The translations under genes were made by a program, and so were the position numbers. Source: Mantamonas sphyraenae STR306 (lineage: Eukaryota > Protista > CRuMs). Taken from it: a stretch of 64,000 bases of DNA. The DNA lies in assembly GCA_026936335.1 (NCBI GenBank), contig JAPMXV010000076.1, positions 62,001 to 126,000 on the forward strand, in the 5' to 3' direction. Positions 3,512-50,194 of the stretch are shown one piece after another. Each line of letters opens with the position of its first letter. Position 1 is the stretch's first letter. Under the pieces are notes generated by a model. It worked only from the letters and a program-made list of their open reading frames with translations, ran no database searches and was not told where the DNA came from.

Positions 3512-3750
3512 GGACCAGTCATCGAAGCCAGCTGGTGGCAATCAAGCACCCAAGTGCCAGATCGATGACGACGACGACGTAGTCCACACTACAGGCAGCG
3601 ATGGCAGCACGCACGATACCAAACGGCAGCGTGTGTAGGCAAAGTCTCCTTGCAAGCGGTCACACCTTGTCTTCTGTGCTCCATCCACCAGGAGTGTAGC
3701 ACATGGCAAGCGTTGGTTGGGATGTGGAAATGTGGCAGTGGTGTGTGGCT

Positions 3751-5430
3751 GGTGTCGACGACCAGAAAGACGCCGGAAGATTGCGCGGGGCTCCTGCTGT
3801 GCCACAGTACGCACGCAGCAAGGGGAATCCTCCAGGGAGGCAGATGGTATCCTGCACAGTATGGGAGGGTAACGGGTCAGCAGGATTGGCATGTTGTGGT
3901 GACACCCGGGGCAGCGTCAACTTCTGCCAGGACCAGTGCCCTGCGCTGCGTGTATGTGCAGATACAACCCCAACGAACAGAACCAAATGGTCATGGGCAT
4001 GCACACACGCACACAAATCACCGCGCATTGTGTGTGGTTGCATCGACGACGACGCAGCAGTGGGGTGGGAATTCCACCCTTGGATTGCGACTGCATGCCG
4101 GGAAGACCCCGTGGTGGTTGCGATCCCGATGCATGCAGTTTGCCAACACACTGTACTTGATGGTGATTCCACTGGCAAGAATGACAGTGGTACAACACAG
4201 CACACAAAGAGCAAGAGAGACCACACCACAACCCAACACACCCAACCGCAAGAGATGAGCACACGCGTTTGCCAGACTTGCCACCAGACCACAGACCGAA
4301 CCCAGGATTGTCGCTATGGCCAGCGATGCCGGTATGGGCCCGAGCGATGCCGGTTCCACCACTGCCACCACCACCACCACCGGCCACGATGGAGTGGTGA
4401 GCACAGCCACCGGACGCAGCCGCAGCAGCAGAGACACACGAAGAAGCAGCGGAAGAAGAAGCAGGAGGCAGGAGACGAGGAGCAGGGAGAGGGAGCAATG
4501 ACCGAGCAGCTGATGCAGGTGGTCGTCACCGTCAGCACAGCTGTGGTCACCAGCATCCTCCGATCACGCGGATGGATCTGAGCCAACCTGCCCCCCCCCT
4601 GGACGACACACGTGGACGAGGAGAGGAGAAGGAGAGACTGGGAGAGAGATGGAAGAGAGAAGTGAGCGGGTGAGATGACGTTCTCTCTTTTTGTCCCTTT
4701 TGCTTGTCTCTTGGTTCCCCGCACCACCCCCAATGTGTGACAATGACACCAACCAAGGGATGCAAAAAGAAAGAACCCACCCACAGATGTGTGCGTGGGG
4801 TGGGGTAGGGTGTGGGTGTGTGTGTGTGTGTCGGTGCTGGTCATGGTGGATCACCATCCATTGTCTCGGGCCATCCGCTGCAGACCTCGCACCAGCTGCA
4901 CTCGGTCCTCATCCGACACTCGCCCAGGGTCGATGTGGGCGTTGGCCAGAAAGGCACGGTTGCCTCGGGCCAGGTTGGGAGCTCCGTCTGCGTTGATGGC
5001 CATCCACCGGTAGTCACCGCCGGTGGTCCAGACTCGGGCGCGTCGCTGTCGCTCGTTGGGCATCTTGTGTGTGTTTGCTGTGGGTTGGGGTTGGGTAAGC
5101 GGGGTGCGCTGGTGTCATTGTGGGTCCCATGGTGCCATTTTGTACACGGCAGGAGCCATCCACATGCTTCTGGGATCGCAGCCATGGCTTTCTCGGTGTG
5201 CAGTTGCCCATCGACCTCCACCGCCAGAATTCCTGATTTCCCACACCCCACCCGCCAGTCGACGAAAACGGACACTTGGATGGCATGGGATGGTCCCACA
5301 CGACGCATTTGTTCCATGGAAGCCCATGCATGCAGTTCATTGCATGAAGCATGTGCCTGTGCATTGTCCACGTGGATCGAGTGGGTGGAACAAGGAGATG
5401 GCTTTGGGCACGACAATGGGTTTGTAGAAC
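3751..5430 (+). repeat. Dispersed repeat family A, copy 2
   Basis: Direct repeat of 1-1690 with substitutions and microsatellite length changes. Confidence 0.92.
4255..4581 (+). CDS. Small CCCH-type zinc-finger protein, second copy
   Basis: Near-identical to 505-843 with a shorter poly-Q run (in-frame indel). Confidence 0.6.
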   Translation: MSTRVCQTCHQTTDRTQDCRYGQRCRYGPERCRFHHCHHHHHRPRWSGEHSHRTQPQQQRHTKKQRKKKQEAGDEEQGEGAMTEQLMQVVVTVSTAVVTSILRSRGWI

Positions 5431-5615
5431 GGTCGTGGTGGTAGCGGATGCACGTGTGCATGTTGGAATCATGGAATGGTGTGGTTTTGGTGGAACTCGG
5501 GTGCAGTCCTCGGAGTCGATCGACTGCACTTCTGGCCAGTTCCCTTTTGCACGGACGGACTGCGCCAACTCACTCAACACAACTACCATCCACACGACAA
5601 CCCATCCAACAAGCG

Positions 5616-6773
5616 ATGAGCACACGCGTTTGCCAAACTTGCCACCAGACAACAGACCGAGCCCAGGATTGCCGCTTTGGCGAGCAATGCCGCTTCGGCC
5701 CCGAACGATGCCGCTACCATCACTGCTACCACCGGCGTGGATGGCGAAGTGAGTGCAAACACCGCAGGGAGCACCAAAGCTACAAGGAGTGGCAGATGGA
5801 GCAGCCCTGGCGACGGAAGCAGGATCAGCGAGCACAGGACACCGAGCAGGCAAGGAAGATCCAGCTGCTGTATGAGGCTCCCAATGGCCGCACCGGTGCC
5901 ATTCTCCTCACAGAGAACAGCACCATTGCCACGCTGCACACATCACTTGCTGACCGCGTGAGGATTCCCGAGGACAGGCTGTGGATGACACACCATGGGA
6001 AGCCGCTGCGTCCGTCGACATCGATATCAATCCACGACTACAACATCGATGAGGGAAGCATCGTCCGCATCATGCTGCGCAACTCGTGGCACCACGAGCC
6101 GCATGACACCGAGGAGACAGAGACAACCACGACACCGGCAGCCACACAATTCACATGTCCAATCTGCGACGACGACGAGGTCGACCCGTCCACCGAGGCC
6201 ACGGCGATGGGATGTGGTCACACGTTCTGCCACCAGTGCTGGTCGAAACACATCGAGGCACGCCTGGGCGAGGCACCCCAGATCCGCTGTCTCGAGAGTG
6301 GCTGCGGAATGGTGGTGGACAGTGGTACGGTCAGCCGTGTGGCAGATCAGGAGCTGTGTGACCGCTACGAGCACATCTGCCTCGGCAAGGCTCTGGACGA
6401 GCTGGGATTGCTGTACTGCGCCAACACAGAGTGCAGCAACGCCTTTGAGGCCGACGCTGGCGACAGCTACGTCACCTGTGCCGCCTGTGGACACAGCACA
6501 TGTGTGTCATGTCGTGCAGCGTGGCACACCGGGATGACATGTGCTGAGGCCAGCGATGCATCGTCCATCCAGGATGTGGCATCCCTGAAGACCATTGCCC
6601 AGACGACAAAGGCATGTCCCGAGTGCAACGAACGCATCGAGAAGAACGGTGGGTGCAAGCACATGACGTGCAAGAAGTGTCAGCACGAGTTCTGTTGGGG
6701 CTGTTTGCAGCCATACACACGCACAGCAAGGAGAGGCCTCAGTGTACAATGTCTGGACACGTGTACAGCGTAG
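5616..6773 (+). CDS. CCCH zinc finger + ubiquitin-like domain + RBR (RING1-IBR-RING2) E3 ubiquitin ligase, Ariadne-like
   Basis: Ubl: RIPEDRLWMTHHGKPL...SIHDYNIDEGSIVRIMLR. RING1: CPICDD...CGHTFCHQCW...CLESGC. IBR: YCANTEC...CAACGHSTCVSCRAAWHTGMTC. RING2: TKACPECNERIEKNGGCKHMTCKKCQHEFCWGC, with the catalytic GGC Cys. Confidence 0.92.
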   Translation: MSTRVCQTCHQTTDRAQDCRFGEQCRFGPERCRYHHCYHRRGWRSECKHRREHQSYKEWQMEQPWRRKQDQRAQDTEQARKIQLLYEAPNGRTGAILLTENSTIATLHTSLADRVRIPEDRLWMTHHGKPLRPSTSISIHDYNIDEGSIVRIMLRNSWHHEPHDTEETETTTTPAATQFTCPICDDDEVDPSTEATAMGCGHTFCHQCWSKHIEARLGEAPQIRCLESGCGMVVDSGTVSRVADQELCDRYEHICLGKALDELGLLYCANTECSNAFEADAGDSYVTCAACGHSTCVSCRAAWHTGMTCAEASDASSIQDVASLKTIAQTTKACPECNERIEKNGGCKHMTCKKCQHEFCWGCLQPYTRTARRGLSVQCLDTCTA

Positions 6774-6879
6774 CACAGGAGCAGTGAGGAGGAAATGGTG
6801 TGTCTGGCTGCGGATGGAAGAGAGAATGGAGCGGGTCAGGTGATGCATTCTCACTTGTTGTCACTCTTGCTTGTATCTT

Positions 6880-7490
6880 GTTCCTCAGCACCCTCATGTG
6901 TGGCAATGACACCAACCAAGGTATGAAAAAAAGAAAGAACCCACCCACAGATGTGTGCGTGGGGTGGGTTAGGGTGTGTGTGTGCTGGTGCTGGTGCTGG
7001 TCATGGTGGATCACCGGAAGCGGTCTGAGCCCCTCTCCTCAGCAGCTCGTCTTGGCGGATGCTCACGGACGGGGTAGGGAGTGTACCATCTGGCATATCT
7101 GTCTGCGTTGATGGCCCTGCGCCGCTCTGCCTCGCTGGTGGTCATGTCTCGCTGTCGCTCGTTGGGCATCTTGTGTGTGTTTGCTGTGGGTTGGGGTTGG
7201 GTAAGCGGGGTGCGCTGGTGTCATTGTGGGTCCCATGGTGCCATTTTGTACCCGGCAGGTGCCACCCACATGCTTCTGGGATCGCAGCCATGGCTTTCTC
7301 GGTGTGCAGTTGCCCCTCGACCTCCACCGCCAGAATTCCTGATTCCCCACACCGCACCCGCCAATCGACGAGAACGGACACTTGGATGGCATGGGATGGT
7401 CCCACACGTCGCATGTGTTCCATGGAAGCCCATGCATGCGGTTCATGGCATGCCACATGTCCCTGTGCATTGTCCAGGTGGATCGGGTGG
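6880..7490 (+). repeat. Dispersed repeat family A, partial copy 3 (3' non-coding part)
   Basis: caatgacaccaaccaagg...ggtcatggtggatcacc and cgctgtcgctcgttgggcatcttgtgtgtg...gcattgtccaggtggatcg match about 985-1115 and 1300-1645. Confidence 0.85.
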
Positions 7491-8602: not shown

Positions 8603-11600
8603 ATGAGCACAAAGGAAGACAGCGGTGCGCTGTGTCGGCGGTTGTTGGACTGTGAGGGCGAGGATGACCAGAGGAAGGCGTTGAAAGAGTGTGGGTTCCA
8701 CAAGAAGGTCATCGATGCCTTGTTGGAAGAGAATGCGTACGGAGTGGCACTGGTGGAGCTTTATCAGACGGAGGACGAGTGGGTGAAATTGCTGGATGAA
8801 GCTGGGATCGAGCGGGAAGTGCGAAGATGGCAGCGGCAGATCAAGCTTTGGGAGACGTTTATTCTGGACTGCGAGACCAAGGCAGGCATGGCGGTGGTGG
8901 AAGACGGGGGAGGTGAAGAGAAGGAGGAGGCTGGTAAGTGAGAGGAGAGAGGGGGTTTGGGGGGTGGAAAGGTTGGAGGAGGCGCTGACACCTGCCCGCG
9001 TGCTTGAGCAGAAAGGGCGTCCAGCTCGTCATCGGCAGGGAGTGTCATGGGCATCATGGACTATTCACGTGTGATGCAGATGAGTGTGGTGCGTGGAGGG
9101 GATGTGTCGTCGGCAGGTTCGTCGAGTGGAGGAGGGGCGAAAGGGAAAGGTGTCGTTGTGAAGGAAGGGCAGATTGTGCCACACAAGCGAAACTCGCGGG
9201 AGAGGTGTGGATGGGACAAGGGCGGGATGAGCGATGTGCGTGTGCTGCTGCTGGGTTCGGATGGACAGGCACGAGGAAAGGTCAAGATAAGCTGTGCAGA
9301 GGAGCAGAGGGCGGTGGAAGCAGCGCGACGAGTGGGCGGCTTGCTGACGAGTGCTGTGGGGGCGGCTGAGCAGGTGGACTTTGTGGCGGAGATTCGTTCA
9401 TTGAAGGCACCGATGGTACACATCATGACACACATGGGGGTGGCAGTGGTGGAGGGAGAGGATGCCTCTGTGACGAGAAAGACGCTTGTGCACTCGCTGC
9501 GAGAAGCAAGTCCCGTGGCGGTGTTTTTGAACGGATGCAGCAGTGCAGAGATGGCCATGGAGATCAATGACCATGTGCCACTGGTGATTGGGTACACCGA
9601 GGCAGTGGACGATCATGCGGCTTTGGACATGGCCAAGGTGTGGTACGAGAACATTGGGAGTGGAGAGACGGTGGAAGAGGCGTTCCGGGCTATGGTGGAA
9701 GCAGGAGGGGAGAAGGAAGGGCCGAAAGCACTGTTGTGTCATTGGCAGGGCATGGAAGACACAGTGTTGGTCAACGCGAGTGGAAAGAAGGCACAGGATG
9801 GGTTCTCCAGGAGACGTGTGGACAATCTGGGCAAAGCACGAGAGCTTGTGCGACGAGAGGAGGTGCTAAGGGAGCTGGAGGAGGCAGAAGGGGTGGTGGT
9901 GGTGTGTGGAGCGAGGGGCATGGGCAAGACAAGCGTGGTAGAGATGCATGCGCAGGAAGTGAAGGAGAAGGGTGGCACGGATGTGGTGTGGTGGTGTGCA
10001 GGACAGAGCAGAGAGGCTTTGGTGAGTGACTTGCTGCAGCTGGGTGTGGCATTGGGCGTGTTCACGGATGCTGGAGTTCAGTCGGCTGAGAAGGAGGAGG
10101 TGCGAGAGGGAATGGCAAAGAGGGTGATGCAGGCGTTGGATGGACAGCGATGGATGTTGGTGATGGACGGGGTGGAGGCATGGGGGGATGTCGAGGCGTT
10201 TGTGCACGGAGGAGGTCGTGTGGTGATGACGACATGGCGGGATGGGGTTTGGGACAAGCGGGTGGTGGACGCTGTGGTGAGGGTGGATGTAATGCGGAAG
10301 GATGAGGTGGATGCCGTGTTTGCGAGTGAGGGTGTGGTGGTGGATGGGGAAGAGGAGGAGAAGGCATATGGGGAACTGAAGAGGCTGCTGGATGGGATGG
10401 CATTGGCTGTGCGACAGGCAGCGGCAGTGATTGGAGAGTGGGGAGAGGGTGGATCGGTGCAGAAGTACGTGAAGAGACTGGGACGCAGTCTGAGACAGCT
10501 GGGGAAGGAGGTGGAGGGCGATGTGTACAGTGGAACAGCGCTGAGTGTGTGGCAGATTGCGATGGAAGAGGCATCGGAGAGGAACGAACATGCAGCAAGG
10601 TTGATGTTGTGCATGGCGCTGTTGGATGGGCAGGATCTGCCAATGAGGCTGCTGGTGACGCTGATGGAGCAGATTGCGGGTGTGGAGGACAGGGAAGAGG
10701 CAGAGGAAATGGCAGAGGAGGCATTGGAGGCACTGCAGAGAGTGTCGCTGGTGCAGAGGATGGTGGAAAGAGGGAGTGGGTGGAAGGTGCATGGGCTGAC
10801 GCAGATGATGGCAAGGGGAGGACAAGCGGTGGTGTTGGATGGAGAGGAAGGCGTAGGGAGGCTGGTGGGTGTGAAGCATGTGTTCATGATGATGCGGAGG
10901 GAGTTTGCTTTCGATTGGAGTGAGTCGCTTGACGAACTTGGATGGCACAGGAGAATGCTAGTGCATGGTGAATCTGTGTGGAATGCATGTCACGAGGTGT
11001 GCGCACTCAGAAGAAATGTGGAGGACATGTGCTGGGTGGGACGGAATGTGGCGCATGTGCATGACTGGATGGGCTCGTATGGAGAGGCGGGAAAGTGGGT
11101 AGAAGAGGTGATGAGAATGCAGAGGGAAGCTGGAGAAGAAGAGGAAGAGACCGAAGGATGGGCGAGAAGTTTGTTCCTGGCTGCAGGGATTGCAGATGCG
11201 AAGGGAGAGTACGATCGTGCACTGGAGCTGCATGAGCAGGCACTGGGAATTAGGCGACGGGTGCATGGTGGGGATGAGCACCCGGATGTGGCATCGAGCA
11301 TCCACAACATGGCTGGGGTGTACGATGACAAGGGAGAGTATGATCGGGCACTGGAGCTGTATGAGCAGGCACTGGATATCAGGCGACGGGTGCATGGTGG
11401 GGATGAGCACCCGGATGTGGCATCGAGTATCAACAACATGGCTCGGGTGTACGATGCCAAGGGAGAGTACGATCGGGCACTGGAGCTGCATGAGAAGGCA
11501 CTGGGGATCTGGCGCCGGGTGCATGATGGGATGAGCACCCGGATGTGGCCACGAGCATCGCCAATATGGCTGGGGTGTACCAGGCCAAGGGAGAGTACGA

Positions 11601-29656: not shown

Positions 29657-30958
29657 ATGCACAGGATGGCACACACACACCCACTTGCCCTGTTGTCGCT
29701 GGTGGCAATCATCATCCTTTTGCCCATGGCCAGCGGGTATGGCACAGTGTCAACCATCAGCATGGTGGCCTCTGCCAACCATGCGGCAGGAGCTCCCGAC
29801 GGGCCCAGCAACGGCGAGGCTGTGGTGGACCTCACCCAGCACAAGGACACGTTCCCGGAAATGTTTTCGCATGATTCGTTGCTGCGCACGGCAATCCTTG
29901 TCGACGTACGTCCCGTGCCGTTCAACGCAAGCATTGGGCAGTACGACGCCTTGCTGAGGCTGGGCGTTCCGTTTTGGCGAGAAAAAGCTGCAGGAGGAGG
30001 GAGCACGGCACTGTGCAATGCCGCCACCACCTCTGAATACGGCACTCTCACACACGTGGGCAACATCCAATACGCAAACGGGGAGAGTGGAGCGGTGTCG
30101 CCGTGTGTGGGCAACAACAGCGTGCTGCCCACGGAACTGGTGGTGCCCATTTGGTTCAAGTTGAAGGACACCCCTGCGGGCACGGTGGTGCATGGGTTCC
30201 AGCTGAACATGACCACCATGCCCACACAGCAAGTGACCGTCGATGGGCCCCCACTCATCACCGACCTGCCCTGGAACGACAACGACAACGACAACGATGA
30301 CGATGACGAGGGTGGTGGCCCCACCACCACCATCTCCCCCCGGGTGCTGCTTGCTCCACGCGTGCTCTTTGCACAGCTTCACACACCCAAAGTGCCCACT
30401 GCATTTGACATTGCCATTGCCGGCCAAGACGGTGCCAAACACTTTGTGAAACAGGTCACGGCAGCCGTGTTTGCCGACGTGTCGAACACAGGCACCACGT
30501 ACGGGGTGTCCACGGGAAAGGTGCTGGCCATCACGGCTCCATTTGGACCCGTGGTATCCAGCAACGACACCCTGGGTCCCTTTTTGTCTCATGTGGCCGC
30601 GGAGGTTGGACAGCCTGCGTATGTGCAGCTGATGTTGGAGTCGGGCACACCGTGGTCTGTGGACGGGTACAGCAGGGCGATTGCCGTGACGCTGGTGTCC
30701 AGGCAGGTGGGACGGTGTTTCAAGGGATGCAACGACATCGCTGGGGCTCGGTGTGACATGTACGCAGGTGGTGTGTGCAACTGTGGTCCCACAATGCAGT
30801 GGGATGTGGCAGAGAACGGCGACCGTGTGTGTGTGAAGCTGCCGAAGCTGGCTTTCAATGTGGCTGTACGCCCGTGTATCACCAAGCTGTGCAGATGTTG
30901 GCTGACCGATGGGAGCAGCTGGTGGCTGCAGGCGACGCCATTGATCTCGGGTACATGA
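29657..30958 (+). CDS. Secreted protein with Cys-rich EGF-like C-terminal motif; last ~35 codons come from an out-of-frame BTB-gene fragment
   Basis: Signal PLALLSLVAIIILLPMASG; CFKGCNDIAGARCDMYAGGVCNCGPTMQW...VCV. Confidence 0.65.
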   Translation: MHRMAHTHPLALLSLVAIIILLPMASGYGTVSTISMVASANHAAGAPDGPSNGEAVVDLTQHKDTFPEMFSHDSLLRTAILVDVRPVPFNASIGQYDALLRLGVPFWREKAAGGGSTALCNAATTSEYGTLTHVGNIQYANGESGAVSPCVGNNSVLPTELVVPIWFKLKDTPAGTVVHGFQLNMTTMPTQQVTVDGPPLITDLPWNDNDNDNDDDDEGGGPTTTISPRVLLAPRVLFAQLHTPKVPTAFDIAIAGQDGAKHFVKQVTAAVFADVSNTGTTYGVSTGKVLAITAPFGPVVSSNDTLGPFLSHVAAEVGQPAYVQLMLESGTPWSVDGYSRAIAVTLVSRQVGRCFKGCNDIAGARCDMYAGGVCNCGPTMQWDVAENGDRVCVKLPKLAFNVAVRPCITKLCRCWLTDGSSWWLQATPLISGT

Positions 30959-31106
30959 ACGCCGGTGTGTTTTGTACCTTGGTCAGCCAAGCAGTCGCAC
31001 AGAACGACCAACGCCTGGACGAGGGTCTGAGTGAGGTGGTGGGACGCTACCTGCGCACAGACAACATCATTGAACTCTGCGACGACGACGACGTCGGCGA
31101 GTACCT
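30852..31106 (+). pseudogene. ~255-bp duplicated internal fragment of the BTB gene (40960-41211)
   Basis: ctttcaatgtggctgtacgcccgtgtatcacca...gacgtc(ggc)gagtacct is nearly identical to 40960-41211; encodes FQCGCTPVYHQAVQMLADRWEQ... Confidence 0.9.
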
Positions 31107-31857: not shown

Positions 31858-32654
31858 AGTCCACCCTGGGAACACGTTGACCACACCCGCGTGTGCAGGG
31901 AGGCAGAGACGCCCCACAACCCGATTTTCCACGGTGGCGCCAATCCCCCTGGTCTGCGTTCTCAGCCCTGCTGAGGATCACACAGACACGCGTCGAGCAC
32001 ATACACCCCACCCAACCGTGCATACAACCTATGGGATGTGCCACATCACCCTCTACATGTCAATAGAGGTCCACCGCGAATACACGGGCCGCAGGAAACC
32101 CCACGCTCGCGCTAGAGGCGGGGAATCCGCCACCCGTTCCCTGCCGCTGCACCCCGCCACAGACCTCACCACGCCCCCACACTCTGCGTCCGGCCCCGTG
32201 TCACAGAGTGCCACCCGTTGCCTGATTCCCGATTTTGGGTGAAATTTTGGCCGATCCTTTTTTGCAATGGGTGATGTCAGCACTTTTTCCACCTCAAAAT
32301 GCAACCCCTGCTGAAACTGGGTCTATGCATAGATTCGCCATGGAAACCTCGACTTGTTCCTCGGCAGGATCACATGCGCTGTGTGTGCCGAGAACGGGGA
32401 GGTTGTTTGCGCCTTGTGTTTTTTCCGGTGGCGCATGTGCCCCAAACGAACAACATGAACGAGAGGGCGATGCATCCCTTCCAATGGTGACAGAATCGTC
32501 CCTGCCTGTTCTGCCCGAGTCTGGATTGCGTGTGTCACCAGCGCTACTGCTCTCTTCTGCCCCTTTCACTCAGCTGAATCTGTCGGACCCAGCGCGTTCA
32601 GGGTAGCATGGCAGACGACCACAACACGCGCCTGCAGGTTCATGAGGTCTGATG
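31858..32654 (+). repeat. Dispersed repeat family C, copy 1
   Basis: gagtccaccctgggaacacgttgaccacaccc...ttccaatggtgacagaatc...ctggattgcgtgtg is shared with 46473-47160, 49553-50194 and partly 37830-38055. Confidence 0.9.
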
Positions 32655-34218: not shown

Positions 34219-37200
34219 TCACTGCTTCTCCCCCATCAACTGCTGCACCAGTGCTTCCAGTGCACTGATCCGCTTCTCAAATGCAATTTCCGTACGCCAG
34301 CGACTCAACCGCTGCTCGGTCGTCTCTCCCATCACATTCGCTCCCAGGCCCAGCAGCAGCTCAAACAATCCACGGTCGTCCTCTTCGCCTGCAATCTGCA
34401 ACGGCGTTCTCCCTCCCACCTGCGCATTCACGTCCACAAACTCCGCGCACACTTCAACCAGCGCGTGCGCTGCTTCGCCACCACGCAGCACATGCTCCCA
34501 CACCGTCCGTGGCGCGTCTCCACCCACCATCTCCACATCATCCACCGAGTACCCTGCCTCCAACAGCACCCTCAACACGGCGACCTGTGCCGTCGTCGTC
34601 TCCACAGCCACGTGCACCAGTTGCTGTCCTGCGGCGTTTGTCGTCTCGTCAGTCCTCGCCGCACCCGCAAGCGCCACCTGCAAACACTCACTGTGCCCTC
34701 GACGCACCAACACATGCAAGCACGTCTCATCACCTCCTGCGCTCTCCTCCTGCGGCGCCCACCACTGCCATCCCGTCGCTGCACGTGCCAGCACACGCAC
34801 CGCTGCTTCATCCCCCTCGCTGCACGCTTGCCACGCCCACCTCTTTGCCGCCTCACTCACATCGACGCCCGTCATCTCTGCTGCCATGTCCATGCCCTCG
34901 GCAACCACCAGGCCCACAGCACGCCCACATCCACGCGCATCCACACGCTCCGACGTCAGCACCACTTGCACAAACCTACCCGCTCCCACATGCTTCACCA
35001 ACTCCACCAACAGTCTATCATCCACCGTCTCCTCCATCACCGCTGCTTCCAACACCGTGCCCAGTTCTCCGTTCTTCCCCACGCTTGCCAACGGGGTCCC
35101 ACCAAAGCGCAGCACCGTCTGCACCACCTCCACGTCGCCTCGACTCACTGCCACCTCCACGATCGTCTGTCCTTCCCCGTCGCGTACTTCCTGCACCTCT
35201 GCCACCGTCGGTGCCTCCATCAACCCAAACAGCCTGCTCAGATCTTCTGCACACAGCGACGCCGTCATCGCGTGTGCTACCAACTGTGACGACGTGCGCG
35301 AGTCCGTGGACGATGATGAAGACGACGACGACTGCGTTCCCTCTTCAACAACGCTACCCATCGCAACCACGGGTGTGTCGTGTGCGCTACGGACAAGCAA
35401 CGCCAGCGCGTCGAGTTGCGACAAGATCTCAGTCGTCAGCAAAGCACGCGCACCGTCGCCCAGCCGCTCTGCACGCTCACGTGGCTCCCCAGCACAGGCA
35501 CACCCAAGTGCACCAAGCCGTTCCACAAGCCACGCCACGGTTTCCGCCTTTGACACGTGCTGCACCGCCTCATGCGCCACCGCCACCAGCTCTAGCCACA
35601 CACACATCTCTCCCACACACGCGTTGGCCGCCTGTGCTGCCACACGCGCCGCACTCAACACGTCAAGCATCGCTCGCTCTCCGTTCAGTAGCACGCCCCA
35701 TTGCACACCCGTGTATCGCAACACCTTGCCACCTCCACCCGCACCTTGCTCTTCCCCATTACTCTCACTCACCCCGTCCTTGCCTGGAGCGTCCCATTTC
35801 GCCGCCGCGTCGTCATCGGCCGCACGTCCACGCACCGACACCGTCCGACCCATCAGCGTTTCCTTCCCCAGCCGCGGCGTCTCTGCCAGCAGCTTCTCCA
35901 CAGCCTCCACCTCCCCTGCCTCTATCGCATCGATCAGTGCTTGTTGCACCTTGCGTTCAAGATACATCTCGTCTTCCAGCTGCGGATACTCGCCCAGCAG
36001 CGCTTCGATCTCGTTGCGTGTTCGCCGATCCGCAATCATCACGTCCTTGTTGTCCACCGTCCCATTCGTACACGGATCCGTGTCGTGCTCCAACAGCCAC
36101 TCCTCCAAACATTCTCGCTCATACGCATGCGACATCTCCCCTTCCACAACCGTCACGCACGGGTCTTGCATCAGCTGCGCACTGATTGGACACACCAGTC
36201 CTTCGGGGATCTCCACCACCGCAACCTTCTTCGACGCCTCCATCGCCTCCACTGACGCACGCACCATGGCCAGCATCTCGTCCACTTCTTCAGAAGGCAT
36301 CGCCGTTCCCTGCAACACCGTCGATCGCCACGCCTCTCTTGCTCCATCCGCCTCGCGTTCCACCAGGCGGAGTACTTGCTGAAGAGGTAGTGACCGCGCC
36401 ACGCCACCATCTCCAAGCAAATGCAGCACGCCGTTGTTCTCAGCCATCTCGTATGGGGTGAAACGCGCAGACTTGGGTCTCGTGTGCGGGTTCGCCCCAT
36501 GAGACAACAAGAACGCACACATCGCCTCGCTGTTGCTCTCCACAGCCACGTGCAGTGCTGTTGTCTCCCCATCGGGCCATGTGTCCACGGGCACACCCCA
36601 ATCCAGTAGAGATTTCATCGTCGCTGTGTCTTGGTCGCGGGCCGCTTGAACAAACGCCTCCGCTCGTGATTTGTTGCGTAAGATCGACTGGTCAGCCCCA
36701 GTGATTCCATCAACACGCCAAATCGATCGGTTGACCTCTAGCGCACGGGCCACTGCTGCGGCACCTTGGTCGCCGATCTTGTTGTTGTAGAGGTACAGCG
36801 TCTGCAGCGTGCTATTCTTCTCAAGCGCAGTGGCCACTGCTGCGGCACCTTGGTCGCCGATCTGGTTGCCGCGGAGGTGCAGCGTCTGCAGCGTGCCATT
36901 GTCCTCAAGCGCACTGGCCACTGCTGCCGCACCTTGGTGGCCGATCTGGTTGTACCCGAGGTTCAGCGTCTGCAGCGTGGTGTTGACCTCAAGCGCACGG
37001 GCCACTGCTGCAGCACCTTGGTCGCCGATCTGGTTGTTGTTGAGGTCCAGCGTCTGCAGCGTGCTATTCTTCTCAAGCGCACGGGCCACTGCTTCGGCAC
37101 CATGGTGGCCGATCTGGTTGAACCCGAGGTTCAGCCTCTGCAGCGTGCTGTTGACCTCAAGCGCACGGGCCACTGCTGCGGCACCTTGGCCGCCGATCTT

Positions 37201-37519
37201 GTTGTTGTAGAGGTACAGCGTCTGCAGCGTGCTGTTGCCATCAAGCGCACGGGCCACTGCTGCGGCACCTTGGTCGCCGATCTGCTTGGCGTAGAGGTTC
37301 AGCGTCTGCAGCGAGTGAAATCCAGAGAAACGCATCTCCCCGCGCGTGTGAGCATAATGCACGGAACCAAACATCCCTAGGTCGTCCAAACCATCCCCAA
37401 CATACGCTACCATGCGCTTTCATTGCCTCGATCACCTTGTCAATGTCAATATCGCCCGTGAGAAGCGATTTCCACTCAGCCACCGAGAGGGCTTTTTCGC
37501 TCGCTTTTCTGCACACCAT
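34219..37519 (-). CDS. LRR (7 x 28 aa) - ankyrin - U-box - ankyrin E3 ligase-like protein; exons 37519-37406 and 37305-34219
   Basis: LRRs TLxLxxNxIGDQGAAAVARALExNSTLQ; ankyrins GETTALHVAV, DETCLHVLV, GRTPLQIA; U-box IPEGLVCPISAQLMQDPC...YERECLEEWL...DPCTN. A 100-nt phase-0 intron (GTATGT..CTCAC..CTGCAG) reconciles ORFs 37241-37600 and 34219-37413. Confidence 0.88.
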
Positions 37520-37829
37520 TGTGGACAACGAGGATGTTTTGAAAGGCTGATATGTCAGTTGCAACCCAGTACGCACCCCAGCGTCACTTTGCATCGTCAT
37601 AGCTTCAATTCATGGCCACTCACCTCGACGACATGTTTGCGTGTGTCCTCACCCGCAGCAACGAGGCACATTGAATCACACCGTCGCCGCCTCCCCGGCA
37701 AGCGACCCGTCTTTAACCCTGCCTCCACGCAGCGGACAAGATACTCCTTTCTCGCACCAAGAGGCGGTTATCTTTTCCGCTGCGTGAGGGCACGACGGGA
37801 GAGAGCACGCCGAAAAGTGCAAGCACGGC

Positions 37830-38055
37830 GCACTGTGCCCCAAACGAACAACATGAAAGGAAGGGCGATGCATTCCTTCCAATGGTGACAGAATCACCCA
37901 CTGCCTGTTCTGCCCGAGTCTGGATCGCGTGTGTCACCAGCGCTACTGCTCTCTCTTGTGCCCCTTTCACTCAGCTGAATCAGTCGGACCCAGCGCGTTC
38001 AGGGTAGCATGGCAGACGACCACAACACGCGCCTGCAGGTTCATGAGGTCTGATG
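37830..38055 (+). repeat. Dispersed repeat family C, partial copy 2
   Basis: tgtgccccaaacgaacaacatgaa...gcctgcaggttcatgaggtctgatg matches about 32435-32654. Confidence 0.88.
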
Positions 38056-40133: not shown

Positions 40134-40309
40134 CAGCAATGGGAAATGGGGACAATCGGCCTGTGTGATCCGTAGAGACACATATGGATGTGTGTCGTAG
40201 TACAACACCGAGGGTGTTTGTCGTTGCTTGCATGTGTGTGCGCTCGACTCGCTGGCGACGGGAGTGACTTTGGTCGTTGGTGCGCATGTTCACACAGATA
40301 AAACATCGG

Positions 40310-43300
40310 ATGTCGACACGAGACGGAAAGGCGGGCACAGCAGCAGGCAACGAAGCGTCGTTGAAGTACGGCGGCATGGAACTGGACACCTCGGGGGCGA
40401 ATCATTACCTGCACGGACAGCGCGAAAACGAGTACGGACCTGCTTCGCAGTTCAGCGCCAATCAGGATCCCATGCAGCAGCAGTTCCACGACTGGTTTGT
40501 CAACCAGTGGGACTGCGACGTGACGCTCAAGCTTTGCATCGCCGATGAAGGTGAGTGCGACGGGTGCGACGGGAGGGCTTTTTGTGCGTTGTCAGGAACA
40601 CAATGGCTCACCGTTGGCACAGGCAAAGACGACGAACAAACACAGGTGGCCGCTTCCCTGGGATCACATTCCCTGTTCCTGCGCATGTTCTCGGGCTACT
40701 TTCGTGACATGCCCTACGAGCGGGAGGATATGGTCGAGCAGCCTGTGTTGGCGCGGTGTGAGGAACACGTGCAGGCGTTTCGCGCCGCCATCGAGTGGTG
40801 CTACACCCAAAGGATCCCAACAGGCGACCCTGCGCTGTGCTACTCACTGCTGTGTGTGGCCAGTGAGTGGCGCATGGCCAAATTGACCGAGCAGGTGCTG
40901 CACTGGGTGCAAAGTGCACAGCTCTCTGCTGCACAGGTCGCTCGGATGTGCAAACGTGCCTTTCAATGTGGCTGTACGCCCGTGTATCACCAGGCTGTGC
41001 AGATGTTGGCTGACCGATGGGAACAGGTGGTGGCGGCAGGCGACGCCATTGATCTCGGGTACATGAACGCGGGTGTGTTTTGTACCTTGGTCAGCCAAGC
41101 AGTCGCACAGAACGACAACCGCCTGGACGAGGGTCTGGGTGAGGTGGTGGGACGCTACCTGCGCACAGACAACATCGTGGAGCTATGCGACGAGGACGAC
41201 GTCGAGTACCTGACTCTGCTGATGGGGCAAGTGGAGCACAACGAAGAAGCTGTGCTGTTGCGTCTGTGTCTGGCAACGCAGGCCGATCCACAGTCATTGT
41301 GCATGCAGATGGCGGGAAAACTCCAGACTCTGGTGGACGAGGACAAGATGGATATGAACGCCCTGCCTGTCGACGTCGTGGTGCAGGTGTTGTCGCAGGA
41401 CGAAATGACGGTGAATAGTGAAGACGTCGTGCTTGGATTGGTGCGTCAGTACGTGGCACAGCATGACGGCGACGGGGAGGAGCAAGGGTGGGAGAAACGT
41501 GTGTTCGGATGTGTGCGTTGCGGCCTGCTCTCGGCCGATGTCCTCAAAGCGGCAAAGAAGGAGATTCGGCAGATGCTGGGCGCAGACGTGTACGGAGACG
41601 CACTCGAGGACTGTATGTCAGTCCGCGACGGGGGCGAACCAGAGAATTGTACAAAGCGCATGGCACCGGCAAAGGAGATCGCAGTCAAGCCGGCGATGCC
41701 CCCAACCACGCAGTCGACCGTGAATCCAAACATGGGCTTGAGTAAGTCGGGTGATGAAGCAGGTGATGAGGGAGCGAGCTGGGAGGAGCGCATTCGTGGA
41801 GCAGTAGGCGGCAGGAAGGACTGACACAGAGGACGCAGAACGTAAGTCGGGTGATGAAGCAGGTGATGAGGGAGCGAGCTGGGAGGAGCGCATTCGTGGA
41901 GCAGTAGGCGGCAGGAAGGACTGACACAGAGGACGCAGGGAGTAAGTCGGGTGATGAAGCAGGTGATTAGGGGGCGAGCTGGGGAGAAGCGCATTCGTGG
42001 AGCAGTGGGTGGCAGGAAGGACTGACACAGAGGACGCAGAACGTAAGTCGGGTGATGAAGCAGGTGATGAGGGAGCGAGCTGGGAGGAGCGCATTCGTGG
42101 AGCAGTAGGCGGCAGGAAGGACTGACACAGAGGACGCAGGGAGTAAGTCGGGTGATGAAGCAGGTGATGAGGGAGCGAGCTGGGGAGAAGCGTAGTCGTG
42201 GAGCAGTGCGTGGCAGGAAGGACTGACACAGAGGACGCAGGGGGTAAGTCGGGTGATGAAGCAGGTGATGAGGGGGCGAGCTGGGGAGGAGCGCATTCGT
42301 GGAGCAGTAGGTGGTAGGAAGGACTGACACAGAGGACGCAGGGAGTAAGTCGGGTGATGAAGCAGGTGATGAGGGGGCGAGCTGGGGAGGAGCGCATTCG
42401 TGGAGCAGTGGGTGGTAGGAAGGACTGACACAGAGGACGCAGAACGTAAGTCGGGTGATGAAGCAGGTGATGAGGGGGCGAGCTGGGGAGGAGCGCATTC
42501 GTGGAGCAGTGGGTGGTAGGAAGGACTGACACAGAGGACGCAGAACGTAAGTCGGGTGATGGAGCAGGCGATGAGGGGGCGAGCTGGGGAGAAGCGTAGT
42601 CGTGGAGCAGTAGGCGGCAGGAAGGACTGACACAGAGGACGCAGGGAGTAAGTCGGGTGATGAAGCAGGTGATGAGGGGGGGAGCTGGGGAGAAGCGTAG
42701 TCGTGGAGCAGTAGGCGGCAGGAAGGACTGACACAGAGGACGCAGAACGTAAGTCGGGTGATGAAGCAGGTGATGAGGGGGCGAGCTTGGGAGAAGCGCA
42801 TTCGTGGAGCAGTGGGTGGCAGGAAGGACTGACACAGAGGACGCAGTTGGTAAGTGGGGTGATGAAGCAGGTGACGAGGGGGCGAGCTGGGGAGGAGCGT
42901 AGTCGTGGAGCAGTGGGTGGTAGGAAGGACTGACACAGAGGACGCAGCTCGTAAGTGGGGTGATGAAGCAGGTGATGAGGGGGCGAGCTGGGGAGAAGCG
43001 TAGTCGTGGAGCAGTGGGTGGCAGGAAGGACTGACACAGAGGACGCAGGGAGTAAGTCGGGTGATGAAGCAGGTGATGAGGGGGCGAGCTGGGAGAAGCG
43101 TAGTCGTGGAGCAGTGGGTGGCAGGAAGGACTGACACAGAGGACGCAGAACGTAAGTCGGGTGATGAAGCAGGTGATGAGGGGGGAGCTGGGGAGAAGCG
43201 TAGTCGTGGAGCAGTAGGCGGCAGGAAGGACTGACACAGAGGACGCAGTTGGTAAGTGGGGTGATGAAGCAGGTGATGAGGGGGCGAGCTGGGGAGAAGC

Positions 43301-44586
43301 GCATTCGTGGAGCAGTAGGCGGCAGGAAGGACTGACACAGGGGGTGCAGCTCGTAAGTGGGGTGATGAAGCAGGTGATGAGGGAGCGAGCTGGGGAGAAG
43401 CGTAGTCGTGGAGCAGTAGGCGGCAGGAAGGACTGACACAGAGGACGCAGTTGGTAAGTGGGGTGATGAAGCAGGTGATGAGGGGGCGAGCTGGGGAGAA
43501 GCGTAGTCGTGGAGCAGTAGGCGGCAGGAAGGACTGACACAGGGGGTGCAGCTCGTAAGTGGGGTGATGAAGCAGGTGATGAGGGGGCGAGCTGGGGAGT
43601 AGCGTAGTCGTGGAGCAGTAGGCGGCAGGAAGGACTGACACAGAGGACGCAGTTGGTAAGTGGGGTGATGAAGCAGGTGATGAGGGGGCGAGCTGGGGAG
43701 AAGCGTAGTCGTGGAGCAGTAGGCGGCAGAAAGGACTGACACAGAGGACGCAGCTCGTAAGTGGGGTGATGAAGCAGGCGATTAGGGGGCGAGCTGGGGA
43801 GGAGCGCATTCGTGGAGCAGTGGGTGGTAGGAAGGACTGACACAGAGGACGCAGAACGTAAGTCGGGTGATGAAGCAGGTGATGAGGGGGCGAGCTGGGG
43901 AGGAGCGCATTCGTGGAGCAGTGGGTGGCAGGAAGGACTGACACAGAGGACGCAGAACGTAAGTCGGGTGATGGAGCAGGCGATGAGGGGGCGAGCTGGG
44001 GAGAAGCGTAGTCGTGGAGCAGTAGGCGGCAGGAAGGACTGACACAGAGGACGCAGGGAGTAAGTCGGGTGATGAAGCAGGTGATGAGGGGGGGAGCTGG
44101 GGAGAAGCGTAGTCGTGGAGCAGTAGGTGGTAGGAAGTACTGACACAGAGGACGCAGGGGGTAAGTCGGGTGATGAAGCAGGTGATGAGGGGGGGAGCTG
44201 GGGAGAAGCGTAGTCGTGGAGCAGTGGGTGGCAGGAAGGACTGACACAGAGGACGCAGGGGGTAAATCGGGTGATGAAGCAGGCAATGAGGGGGTGAGCT
44301 GGGGAGAAGCGTAGTCGTGGCGCAGCAGGTGGTATGAAGGACTGACAGAGAGGGCTTAGCCAATGTTGGCTACTCCTCAAAGGGACAAGTGCTCAGCCAA
44401 GGTACACAAGTGAGTGTGGCACCATCTTACGCCGCTGGGGACACAGTCACGATTGACTTTTCTCACAGGAACCAAACGGTGACTTTCTACGTCAACCACA
44501 AAGAACAAGGTGCGGTGGAGGTTGGAGCAAAGTCTCCCCTCTTTCCAGTGATATCTGCAAAGCACGCGACCGCTTCGCTTTGTTGA
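40310..44586 (+). CDS. BTB/POZ - BACK - SPRY-like protein (putative cullin-3 adaptor); exons 40310-40550, 40623-41741, 25 three-nucleotide microexons, 44360-44586
   Basis: BTB: CDVTL...SHSLFLRMFSGYFRDM...AIEWCYT. BACK: LPVDVVVQVLSQDEMTVNSEDVVL...CVRCGLL. Last exon GYSSKG...GDTVTIDFS..TVTFYVNHKEQG...LFPVIS is SPRY-like. First donor (41742) and last acceptor (44359) are both phase 1. Confidence 0.8.
41742..44359 (+). repeat. Tandem array of 26 near-identical 97-98-nt spliceosomal introns separated by 3-nt microexons
   Basis: Each unit reads GTAAGT(c/g)gggtgatgaagcagg...ggACTGACacagaggacgCAG + NNN. NNN in order: AAC GGA AAC GGA GGG GGA AAC AAC GGA AAC TTG CTC GGA AAC TTG CTC TTG CTC TTG CTC AAC AAC GGA GGG GGG. 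The last unit is slightly divergent (GTAAAT..TAG). Confidence 0.88.
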
Positions 44587-46472: not shown

Positions 46473-47160
46473 GAGTCCACCCTGGGAACACGTTGACCAC
46501 ACCCGCGTGTGCAGGGAGGCAGAGACACACTGGCACAATTTCACTCGGTGGCGCCAGATCCCGTGGCCTGCGTTCTCTCCCCTGCCGAGGGTCATACAGG
46601 CCTGTAGAAAGCACATGCGCCCTATCCACCCGTGTATACGCCCTGTGGAATGTGCCACGTCACCCTCCACATGTCAACAGAGGTCCCACGCGTGAACACG
46701 GGCCGGAGGAAACCCACATTCGACTTGACGTGTGTGGATTCTGACCACCCGTTCTCCGCCGCTGCACCGCGCCACAGACCTCACCACCCCGCCACACTCT
46801 GCATCCGGCCCCGTGTCACAGAGTGCCACCCGTTGCCTGCGTCTCAGTTTTGGGTGAAATTCTGGCCGATCCTTTTTGCCATGGGCGATGTCGGCACTTT
46901 TTCCACTCCAAAATGGAACCCCACCTGAAACTTGGTCCATGCGTGGGTTGGCCATGGAAACCTCGACCTCTTCCTCAGCAGGATCACATGCGCTGTGTAT
47001 GCCGAGAACGGGGAGGTTGTTTGTGTTGTGTTTTTTCCAGTTGGCCAGCACGGCGCATTGTGCCCCAACGAACAAGGTGAATGGAGAAAGCAATGCATCC
47101 CTTCCAATGGTGACAGAATCACCCACTGCCTGTCCTTCCCGAGTCTGGATTGCGTGTGCC
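46473..47160 (+). repeat. Dispersed repeat family C, copy 3
   Basis: Colinear with 31858-32535 and 49553-50194. Confidence 0.9.
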
Positions 47161-47409: not shown

Positions 47410-49403
47410 CTATTCCTCCACGCAGCTGATGCTGATTTGGTCTCCCTGACTGAAAAGCGTTGCTGCCGGGTACCAGTCTTCTTCAGAGTTGATGCTCCGC
47501 AACCGGTAGCGAACCTGTTTGGAGGTCACCGTCAACGTGATCACAAGCTGACCATGTGCGTCGCAAATCAACGTCACTTCGTCTCCCGGATTCAGCGGCT
47601 CCACGTCGCGCACCATCCTGCCACTCTGCCAAAGTTCCCCCCGTGTGTTCACGCCTATGCCTGCCTTCCCCCCAGAGAATTCGTCTGTCGGATGTGTTAG
47701 TGCGTGCCAAACAAACCTCCACTGTCTCTTCCGAACAACTCACACAAAGGGGTTCCTTGGGATGGAAAGCTGCCACGGACGACGCCGATCGTGTTTGCGA
47801 TCTCAAAGTGTTCACACTTGAACTTGCACGTCATCCCGACTCGCAGCGGTTGTTTTGCGACCCACAGCAAAGGTGTCTCTGACTGCGATGTAACTTTTGC
47901 GCCGTCATTGCGAAATTCCCCAAGGTGGTGAGGGACTCGCAATAAATCAACTTGCATCCCTGCGCTCAAGGATGCACGCCACTGGTTGAATACAGGTTGC
48001 TGGCCGTCTTGGATCAGTGTGCGATCCTCCAAGGCGTTCATGAGCGTCTCCATCCGCACGTATCTCGTGTCCCAGCGACCTTTCACCTTGAAGGATCGCA
48101 GCACATCCCCCGAAAGCAGCCCAAAGCGAACACATTCGAGCACTCGCCTTCTAACGTCATCACATTGACACGAGTTGTAGCCTTGGGCCATGGCCAACGC
48201 CTCATCCTCCGACTCAACATTCAGGATATCCGAGCCGAGAATGACTTGAACGACGCTGCATGGCCAATCTGTGGGGATCTGATTGTCCAACAGGTATGCA
48301 TGAGCAGCCACGTTCGTACACAGTGTCACGAGCAGGTCGTCATCCAAGTGGTCATTCTGTTGCACCTCGAGGGCGAAACAAAGCATGTCCACATGGAAGG
48401 TGTGATCCAAACTGGACATGAGAGCTTCAATGAAACGAAAATGGAGCTCCGTGCATCGAGAGACCACACTTGGGTGAGAGACATACCCCATCAGAACATG
48501 AGCAAGGACGGACTTCGCTCTGTTAGTGTGTGGGCAGTTGATTCTCATCTTCCTGAACAAGTCGAATGTGTCCATCCACTTCGAGCCGGGGAAAAGCACT
48601 TCGACAACCAGCGCACAGAACACATCCGGGGTCATGAAGCTCAAATCGAACCATGCTTCGTGCACACTCTCGAACATGTTCTCCTTCTGCGCAAGTTGGC
48701 GTACGGCATAGTGGTAGATGTTCTCTCCAGCATCTTGACAATAGCTCGCCACGCGACACATCTCCATGAGATCCTCGACAGAGTGCTCTGCATCCAACCA
48801 AATCATCACGTGTTTGGTCAACGCCGGCATCCGCCAGTACTGAGCGACAAAGAGGAGAGAAAAGCAAAGGCCCGGATTGTGCACGGGCAGAGGGTGTCCG
48901 TAGCACCAAGCCACTGCCTGTCTCATGGCACGCATCACAGCCACACTGGTGCTTTCCGCCGACACCACAATCTTTGGCTCGCCTTCCACGTCCAAACAGT
49001 CCCTCCAGAACCCGCTGTGCAGACACAGGAATAGAGAATGGGCGTCCACGTGTGTGTCCTCGTTTCCATGCGTCGAAGCGTCTGTGTGCGTGAGGGTGTC
49101 AGCGCCCGAGTTTTCGTTGTGTGTGGATTCCATTTCACGCACGCTTTTTTGGTACTCACCGGCGTTGCTGAGTCCCTCAAAGACGATGGTCAGGTCGGTG
49201 CGGAACCCCTGCAGAAACAGGTCGTTGTGTAAATGCGCCAGAGCAGGGCGGTGCGGCAACTGGCCCTGGCTGTTCGTGCTCTGCGGAGTTGCCGGCCCGT
49301 ACGCCTTGTCGTCCCGATCTATGGACAGGTACGCATCCGGTGTCTCGTCCAGCAACTGAGGAATGTCGTTGCGGTTGTCGGCCACGAAGCGCATGAATGT
49401 CAT
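47410..49403 (-). CDS. BTB/POZ - BACK - SPRY-like protein, paralog of 40310-44586; predicted introns 49159-49082 and 47743-47685
   Basis: TDLTIVF...AHSLFLCLHSGFWRD...AVAWCYG; ILGSDILNVESEDEAL...CVRFGLL; TIGVV, GVNTRGEL, PGDEVTL, WYPAATL. Both introns have GTGAGT, CTRAC and CAG, are phase 1, and keep or restore the frame. Confidence 0.85.
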
Positions 49404-49552
49404 ACTCCCCCCGGGTGCTTTTCGGTGTGTGTGGCCCAGGGCACCGTGTTGGCGCTGAGTGGTTTCTATCGCATACATTTTGTCTCTCACACATCCGAAG
49501 GAAATGGGCCAACCAAGACTGTGCTTCACCGAAATCCAGGTGAAGTTCTAAC

Positions 49553-50194
49553 CAGAAACACACTGGCGCAATTTCACTCGGTGGCGCCAGATCCCGTGGC
49601 CTGCGTTCTCTCCCCTGCCGAGGGTCACACAGGCCTGTAGAAAGCACATGCGCCCCAATCATCCGTGTATACGACCTGTGGAATGTGCCACGTCACCCTC
49701 CACATGTCAACAGAGGCCCCACGCGTGAACACGGGCCGGGGAAACCCCCATGGGCCGTGACGTGTGTGGATTCTGACCACCCGTTCCCAGCCGCTGCACC
49801 GCGCCACAGACCTCACCACGCCGCCACACTCTGCATCCGGCCCCGTGTCACAGAGTGGCACCCGTTGCCTGCGTCTCAATTTTGGGTGAAATTTTGGCCA
49901 ATCCTTTTTGCCATGGGCGATGTCGGCACTTTTTCCACTCCAAAATGCAACCCCACCTGAAACTTGGTCCATGCGTGGGTTGGCCTTGGAAACCTCGACT
50001 TGTTCCTCAGCAGGATCACATGCGCTGTGTATGCCGAAAACGGGGAGGTTGTTTGCGTTGTGTTTTTTCCAAGTTGGCCAGCACGGCGCATAGTGCCCAA
50101 ACGAACAACGTGAATGCAGGAAGCAATGCATCCCTTCCAATGGTGACAGAATCACCCACTGCCTGTCCTGCCCGAGTCTGGATTGCGTGTGTGT
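49553..50194 (+). repeat. Dispersed repeat family C, copy 4
   Basis: acacactggcgcaatttcactcggtggcgccagatccc...ctggattgcgtgtg, highly similar to 46525-47160. Confidence 0.9.

Follow-up and report, generated by a model that had tools for sequence, protein, structure and literature searches.

A 64,000-nucleotide (nt) stretch of the Mantamonas sphyraenae STR306 genome (contig JAPMXV010000076.1, positions 62,001 to 126,000 of the forward strand; the window, to whose first letter all coordinates refer unless a contig is named) holds a predicted gene of the BTB-BACK-SPRY family that is interrupted by a tandem array of 26 intron-like units, each separated from the next by exactly three bases. The best-supported reading of this arrangement takes each triplet to be a one-codon exon in an array of introns that are spliced serially, and we lean somewhat towards it because the pattern of variation at exactly the three spacer bases is non-neutral.

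Anatomy of the array and variation of its spacers

The array lies in a eukaryotic assembly of 25.06 Mb in 78 contigs, with a GC content of about 58%. Tandem Repeats Finder gives it a period of 101 nt, 25.9 copies and 93% matches, and a pattern scan, which confirmed the tandem array with one-codon spacers noted in a preliminary description of the window, finds 26 unit starts, the first at 41742 and the last at 44262, over a length of 2,618 nt (Table 1). Each unit consists of GTAAGT, the branch motif ACTGAC and a CAG placed 14 nt past the branch A. The 5′ site is of the GTRAGT kind, with GTAAGT in 25 of the 26 units and GTAAAT in the last; CTGAC is present in all 26, and CAG closes all but the last, which ends in TTAG at 44359. 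At 25 of 25 junctions exactly 3 nt lie between AG and the next GT, from the first spacer at 41839-41841 to the last at 44259-44261. The 25 triplets are of five kinds (AAC, eight times; GGA, six; TTG and CTC, four each; GGG, three) and run AAC GGA AAC GGA GGG GGA AAC AAC GGA AAC TTG CTC in units 1-12 and GGA AAC TTG CTC TTG CTC TTG CTC AAC AAC GGA GGG GGG in units 13-25. In sequence they correspond to microexons, that is, short frame-keeping exons between a 3′ and a 5′ splice site. The string AGNNNGTAAGT (CAG, NNN, GTAAGT) is present in the window 24 times where 0.54 occurrences are expected, which places the array far above chance. Tandem arrays elsewhere in the window have periods of 84, 129, 144 and 252 nt, all divisible by 3; the array with one-codon spacers is the sole one whose period is not, 101 being 98 + 3.

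Table 1. Features of the array gene and of a neighbouring paralog in the window
Feature	Coordinates	Strand	Basis
Exon 1, inferred ATG at 40310, start of BTB region	40310..40550	+	Open frame 40277-41824; boundary GAAG/GTGAGT
Putative 72-nt intron, in frame, stop-free, removal inferred	40551..40622	+	GTGAGT…CTCAC…CAG, branch A 12 nt from AG
Exon 2: remaining BTB, BACK, non-conserved tail	40623..41741	+	Pfam; paralog alignment
Tandem array: 26 intron-like units, each of 97-98 nt	41742..44359	+	Tandem Repeats Finder and pattern scan
25 three-base spacers, candidate one-codon microexons	41839..44261	+	Last 3 nt before each next GTAAGT
Last exon: CC, then C-terminal half of SPRY, stop 44584-44586	44360..44586	+	Pfam SPRY; aligns with paralog last exons
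Neighbouring paralog, complete SPRY, one ordinary 59-nt phase-1 intron (47685-47743)	47410..49529	-	GTGAGT…CTAAC…CAG, branch A 12 nt from AG

No copy of the unit was found elsewhere in the 25-Mb genome, which confines it to the array itself, and a genome-wide pattern search for two successive AG-NNN-GTRAGT junctions returned no homologous array; the other matches to that pattern were (AGTG)n microsatellites and two to three inspected chance matches (C59, C34). Metagenomes were also scanned, both with the unit junction pattern (0 matches) and on the basis of protein (0 confirmed loci), and a word search with the translation of exons 1 and 2 found no relatives at E <= 0.001. An origin as an introner-like element was rejected, there being no dispersed unit copies in the genome and no stable fold (z-scores of 0.3 to 1.4).

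Local rules for introns were drawn from ten reference introns, namely those of eight paralogs, that of the paralog in the window and intron 1 of the array gene. These introns measure 59-72 nt, start with GTRAG or GTACG, and have their AG 12-25 nt past a CTNAC branch motif with no earlier AG. By its 5′ site, its CTGAC and its CAG at +14, each array unit looks like a complete intron under these rules, except that most units have further AGs at +5 and +7. Of the 15 splice-signal columns, none is variable in units 1-25, compared with 20 of the 83 other columns (Fisher one-sided P = 0.024). The spacers are hypervariable amid these invariant signals: mean pairwise diversity is 0.70 in the three spacer columns and 0.058 in the unit body (a 12-fold difference), the spacer is the most diverse three-column window of the whole unit, and at least seven substitution events fall in the 3 spacer columns (2.3 per site) versus 23 in the 98 body columns (0.23 per site; Poisson P = 9e-6). 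In five pairs (u01/u02, u01/u04, u06/u07, u06/u08, u10/u15) the bodies show 0-1 differences over 98 positions, and the spacers differ at every one of their three bases. Because bodies that are so alike carry different triplets, neutral point mutation is excluded, and selection on the spacer bases, or their protection, is needed. All five triplet types measure 3 nt, although 1-nt insertions and deletions have hit the bodies (giving units of 100 and 101 nt). Judged from the sequence, the bodies undergo homogenisation and the triplets are held distinct or altered, precisely at the bases that would survive splicing. The preliminary description presupposed that translation sees the triplets, a premise that is indirectly supported by hypervariable columns set among invariant splice signals and by near-identical bodies bearing entirely different triplets.

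The same pattern bears on the possibility that the array is one long intron, removed whole, with the first GTAAGT as its 5′ site and the last AG as its 3′ site, to leave a Thr codon (A+CC), in which case the triplets would belong to a 2,618-nt non-coding intronic minisatellite. The direct junction is in frame, and the human F7 minisatellite of identical 5′ sites offers a precedent, as only its most upstream site is used (PMC1557585). Such a reading leaves unexplained why diversity is focused on the 3 nt between CAG and GTAAGT and why identical bodies carry different triplets, and it would oblige the spliceosome to bypass 25 complete branch and 3′ sites in a genome with known introns of 59-72 nt. 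We consider it rather unlikely.

The unit bodies could also matter for what they encode as RNA. The mammalian SNORD115/116 clusters are the model for a small-RNA host array, in which the intron bodies would be box C/D snoRNA-like and conserved, with the spacers free to vary. RUGAUGA, in the form GUGAUGA, is found twice per unit (positions 10 and 22) and CUGA once (position 81), and Rfam returns weak matches to the archaeal C/D family sR2. These matches reach 14-15 bits with E values of 4-8, the cut-off being 42; the CUGA belongs to the branch motif, there is no terminal stem, and the box columns vary like the rest (4/14 versus 16/84), both boxes being lost in two units. With a guide defined as at least 10 nt complementary to ribosomal RNA (rRNA) beside box D, the longest match to the genome's own 18S, 5.8S and 28S rRNA is 7-10 nt, as in shuffled units. 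Box C/D snoRNAs were rejected on these grounds, and a small-RNA host array is in our view highly improbable. The rDNA locus of the genome, at G000:C78:9800-19799 (L034), carries 18S at 482-2293, 5.8S at 2627-2780 and 28S at 3397-7009 of the locus; the rDNA unit recurs about every 10.7 kb on a 32-kb contig, and more 18S sites lie on C39 and C40.

The opposite strand of the array is open over long distances in all three frames, with open reading frames (ORFs) of 946, 920 and 591 amino acids that could specify a minus-strand repeat protein. Of shuffled units, 14% are likewise free of minus-strand stops, so composition explains the openness; the ORFs match no Pfam family, and units of 100 and 101 nt shift their frame freely. 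We rejected them as a composition artefact and give a protein of this kind next to no chance.

The host gene and the origin of the array

The gene around the array is recognizable as a family member with an incomplete SPRY domain. With the exons searched separately, Pfam detects BACK at 30.9 bits (cut-off 20.9), BTB at 20.0 bits, slightly below its cut-off of 20.5, and SPRY at 27.6 bits (cut-off 26.3), the last over profile positions 41-110 of 121 only (match on 44362-44583). Exon 2 can be aligned to the paralogs until about 30 residues short of its end. One codon base is left over at that end (A at 41741), and the frame of the last exon requires two (CC at 44360-44361), so the gap between the two exons is phase 1. 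Ahead of the array some 57 residues, the N-terminal half of SPRY, are missing, and a further 7 or so behind it; the N-terminal half is retained in all eight paralogs compared, one of which, L016, spans profile positions 4-116. The array gene thus carries a partial SPRY in place of an intact substrate-binding domain. The preliminary description had placed the triplets in a loop of a putative cullin-3 substrate adaptor, a label that we take to follow from what is known of the BTB-BACK family. With half of SPRY missing this placement fails, and the peptide would lie between the BACK-linked tail and a half SPRY.

The state of the SPRY domain raises the question of decay. In a decaying gene the array would stay unspliced, the protein would stop 27 codons into unit 1 (TGA at 41822-41824), and the array and the half-SPRY exon would be drifting relics in a repeat-rich region. 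The loss of the N-terminal half of SPRY, the presence elsewhere of a copied 258-bp fragment of the gene and the repeat-rich surroundings would fit such a history. Against it stands the last exon, whose 74 codons are open, whose end coincides with the ends of the paralogs and which has retained SPRY motifs despite an identity of only about 25%; the splice signals that are invariant in 25 units and the non-neutral triplet pattern also speak against drift. Decay of the gene is in our judgement unlikely. We also considered the unit body as a relic of the lost SPRY coding half and rejected it: when three units were translated in all frames and compared with the N-terminal SPRY halves of the paralogs, none gave a significant match (in the best case, 7 of 300 shuffles scored equally well).

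The paralogs indicate where the array may have come from. Eight of them, 38-44% identical to the array gene, have a single phase-1 intron of 59-72 nt at the homologous SPRY position. Most of these introns start with GTAAGTC, and seven of the eight begin with GTAAG or GTACG and contain ACTGACAC. The junction of the TTG units, CGCAG-TTG-GTAAGT, equals the paralog exon end plus 5′ site at the homologous position, with 14/14 matches in L018, 13/13 in L017 and 18/22 in L016. This identity would fit intron gain by tandem duplication (PMC3265369), many times repeated, and hints that the unit 3′ end together with the TTG triplet may descend from the end of an ancestral exon (GCA GTT G, likewise in phase 1). 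The 13-14-nt identity CGCAGTTGGTAAGT between window positions 42845-42855 and the exon-intron borders of L017 and L018 exists despite a protein identity of about 40%; shared ancestry or gene conversion is a possible source of it. Traces of block growth are visible within the array, in that u09 equals u23, u07/u08 are close to u22 and the mean difference is low at offset 14, and unit position 7 is G in just those units that follow a TTG or CTC triplet. Gain and loss of units, as put forward in the preliminary description, is the visible growth mode of the array, with multi-unit block duplications and four TTG/CTC dimers.

Taking serial splicing as the preferred reading, we infer the following history. 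An ancestral phase-1 intron site in a fast-evolving BTB-BACK-SPRY paralog would have been the starting point, from which a complete short intron with three flanking exon bases was amplified to 26 tandem copies by unequal exchange. The units would most likely be removed singly by the spliceosome, stepwise and in a manner like recursive splicing, with 3 nt left per step; removal one by one is the most likely course because the units largely satisfy the intron rules of the genome and the introns of the genome are short. The outcome would be up to 25 one-codon exons and a linker of 26 residues, basic and then Ala/Leu-rich (KRKRRGKQRK-LARKLALALAQQRRG-A), before the truncated SPRY remnant. Because the sites are identical, a certain amount of skipping is plausible and would keep the frame, but nothing points to a functional repertoire. 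In a bolder form of this proposal the array would be a satellite that encodes a peptide via splicing, one codon per 101-bp unit, with a basic linker made variable in length by unit gain and loss and by mis-pairing of sites, with its triplets under selection and its bodies homogenised. That form strikes us as doubtful.

Several observations weigh against serial splicing of one-codon exons. Most units have AGs at +5 and +7 from the branch A, whereas the reference introns have no AG before the used one, and splicing to the AG at +7 would produce an exon of 10 nt, with loss of the frame. At 97-98 nt the units are longer than the family introns (59-72 nt) and far richer in G and A. The proportion of junction codons with G or C at the third position (GC3) is 10/26, compared with 0.69 in the gene, a difference with P = 0.001 if the codons are independent, in a test that is uninformative given so few codon types (8 distinct, 4 of them ending in G or C). 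The units themselves are non-independent samples, which makes the P values rough. Serial removal of 26 introns would be costly, with an early stop from any retained unit, and the lack of the N-terminal half of SPRY means that the downstream exon is possibly a relic.

Other features of the window lie close to these genes. A piece of the BACK region of the array gene (40957-41211) is copied at 30849-31106, over 258 bp and with 93% nucleotide and 84% protein identity; a second site lies on another contig (G000:C77:102991-103275), and the copies lie in a 120-codon open frame. A dispersed repeat of 640-700 bp, with direct copies at 46520-47158 and 49553-50191 that are 94.5% identical, flanks the minus-strand BTB-BACK-SPRY paralog. 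Its third copy, at 31864-32555 (82%), adjoins the array-gene fragment, and a partial copy at 37819-37956 lies upstream of the array gene; the repeat may mark a duplicating cassette. Near the BTB gene, a minus-strand open frame at 34219-37413 (1,064 residues) encodes an unusual mix of LRR_6 leucine-rich repeats, ankyrin repeats and a U-box. Two tandem repeats are present farther away: one of 144 nt at 19163-22878 (25.8 copies, 99% identity), probably a very young coding repeat because its period is divisible by 3, and one of 129 nt at 11195-12890 (13 copies, 88% identity), probably a coding repeat of 43 residues.

Freedom from stops and the idea of a repertoire

The preliminary description also saw in the triplets a stop-proof alphabet from which alternative splicing could draw a large repertoire of loop sequences, or else a basic peptide that might tune localisation. 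The arithmetic behind this idea was reproduced by script. The exons end in A, C or G in all 25 triplets, the 15 junction codons that can be reached by any pattern of inclusion and skipping contain zero stops, and the frame is kept in every pattern, including the one that skips all triplets and gives ACC (Thr). Full inclusion yields the translation KRKRRGKQRKLARKLALALAQQRRGA, a conceptual 26-residue peptide derived by script only, and patterns with skipping add the residues E, I, V, T and P, as claimed. The 2^25 inclusion patterns reduce to 2,616,108 distinct mRNAs. With the upstream acaCAG as 3′ site the exon would, as described, lengthen to 12 nt without loss of frame and encode [K/Q/E]-D-A-[E/A/G/V]. 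Such a variant is unlikely on the sequence of the units, as acaCAG lies 5 nt from the branch A compared with +12 to +25 for the AGs of the reference introns, which have none intervening.

The step from this arithmetic to a selected or designed feature does not hold. Among random alphabets of five distinct triplets, 49% are stop-proof under uniform base composition, 57% under that of the window, 53% under that of the array and 55% under that of exon 2. Between 22% and 46% of draws contain no T-ending triplet at all, and the chance that 26 random codons are free of stops is P = 0.29. About half of random five-triplet alphabets are thus as stop-proof as the one observed, a property that arises because there are few triplet types in a T-poor context. 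Stop freedom and frame keeping are by-products of 3-nt spacers and five triplets that do not end in T, not the marks of a designed alphabet.

A large functional repertoire of linkers or loops, produced by alternative splicing of a regulated or stochastic kind from a triplet alphabet shaped for it, has some appeal nonetheless. Every pattern is in frame and stop-free, with 2.6 million distinct mRNAs possible, and the identity of the sites makes mis-pairing plausible. The classical monopartite nuclear import signal has a K-(K/R)-x-(K/R) core in an exposed segment, and the conceptual full-inclusion peptide begins with KRKRRGKQRK, whose KRKR-type basic runs would fit that motif if the peptide is made and exposed. 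Exon skipping is generally rare in organisms that splice by intron definition, which counts against a repertoire, as do the chance level of stop-proofness, the use of only five triplet types and the absence of an intact domain. A combinatorial repertoire as a designed feature appears unlikely, and we find the reading of the array as an alphabet for functional variants or nuclear import tuning hard to credit.

Known comparators and significance

Very short exons and repeated splice sites are known from several systems, each of which differs from the array in an important respect. The micro-exon genes of schistosomes have symmetric very short exons (6-36 nt) whose in-frame skipping generates protein variation; their introns are unrelated to one another, whereas the array would be a satellite of identical introns with 3-nt exons. 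The IFI6/6-16 gene carries a minisatellite that repeats splice donor sites. Minisatellites of this kind and of the F7 type repeat 5′ sites only, in units of 12-37 nt, whereas in the array the repeated unit is an entire putative intron, branch and 3′ sites included. The minisatellite of human F7 intron 7 (PMC1557585) resembles the array in being a tandem repeat across an exon-intron border with many identical splice sites and in-frame effects.

Exons of a single codon or less are spliced in plants, where APC11 and VPS55 have 1-nt exons (PMC8831610), and in Drosophila, where homothorax has a 3-bp exon (PMC7392893). Like the spacers, these exons lie between a 3′ site and a strong GTRAGT and keep the frame. 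They are single, conserved and confirmed by RNA, in contrast to the array, which would have 25 in a row between near-identical 98-nt introns, is young, occurs at one locus and is known from its sequence alone. Recursive splicing offers a second parallel, through a zero-nt exon in BOT1 of the short-intron yeast C. neoformans (bioRxiv 10.1101/224170) and through the ratchet points of Drosophila (PMC8605326). Here too a 5′ site follows almost directly after a 3′ site, and removal is stepwise with the 5′ site re-presented at each step. Ratchet points leave 0 nt in the mRNA and are scattered in a long intron, whereas the array would leave 3 nt per step from units in tandem; the junctions are not ratchet points proper, which have zero-nt juxtaposed sites, as 3 nt are present at 25/25 of them, and they may function similarly. 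The third parallel is intron gain by tandem genomic duplication, described by Hellsten et al. in 2011 (PMC3265369) and for the potato RdRp (PMC4974935), in which a duplicated segment with splice signals yields a working intron in one step. The known gains are single and leave the mRNA unchanged, whereas the array would represent about 25 rounds with one codon added in each.

How much the array means for the biology of introns depends on which reading is correct. The idea of a stop-proof alphabet adds nothing beyond arithmetic, and should the array be no more than an intronic minisatellite, only its unit would set it apart from ordinary repeats. Full-text literature searches turned up no published tandem array of one-codon exons, and should the units be removed singly, this array would be, as far as those searches show, the first. 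It would then provide a test bed for the minimum size and packing of exons and for the order in which neighbouring introns are removed, and a test of whether intron gain by tandem duplication can run away and write new peptide sequence. The coding and non-coding parts of one repeat unit would, in that case, evolve under opposite regimes.

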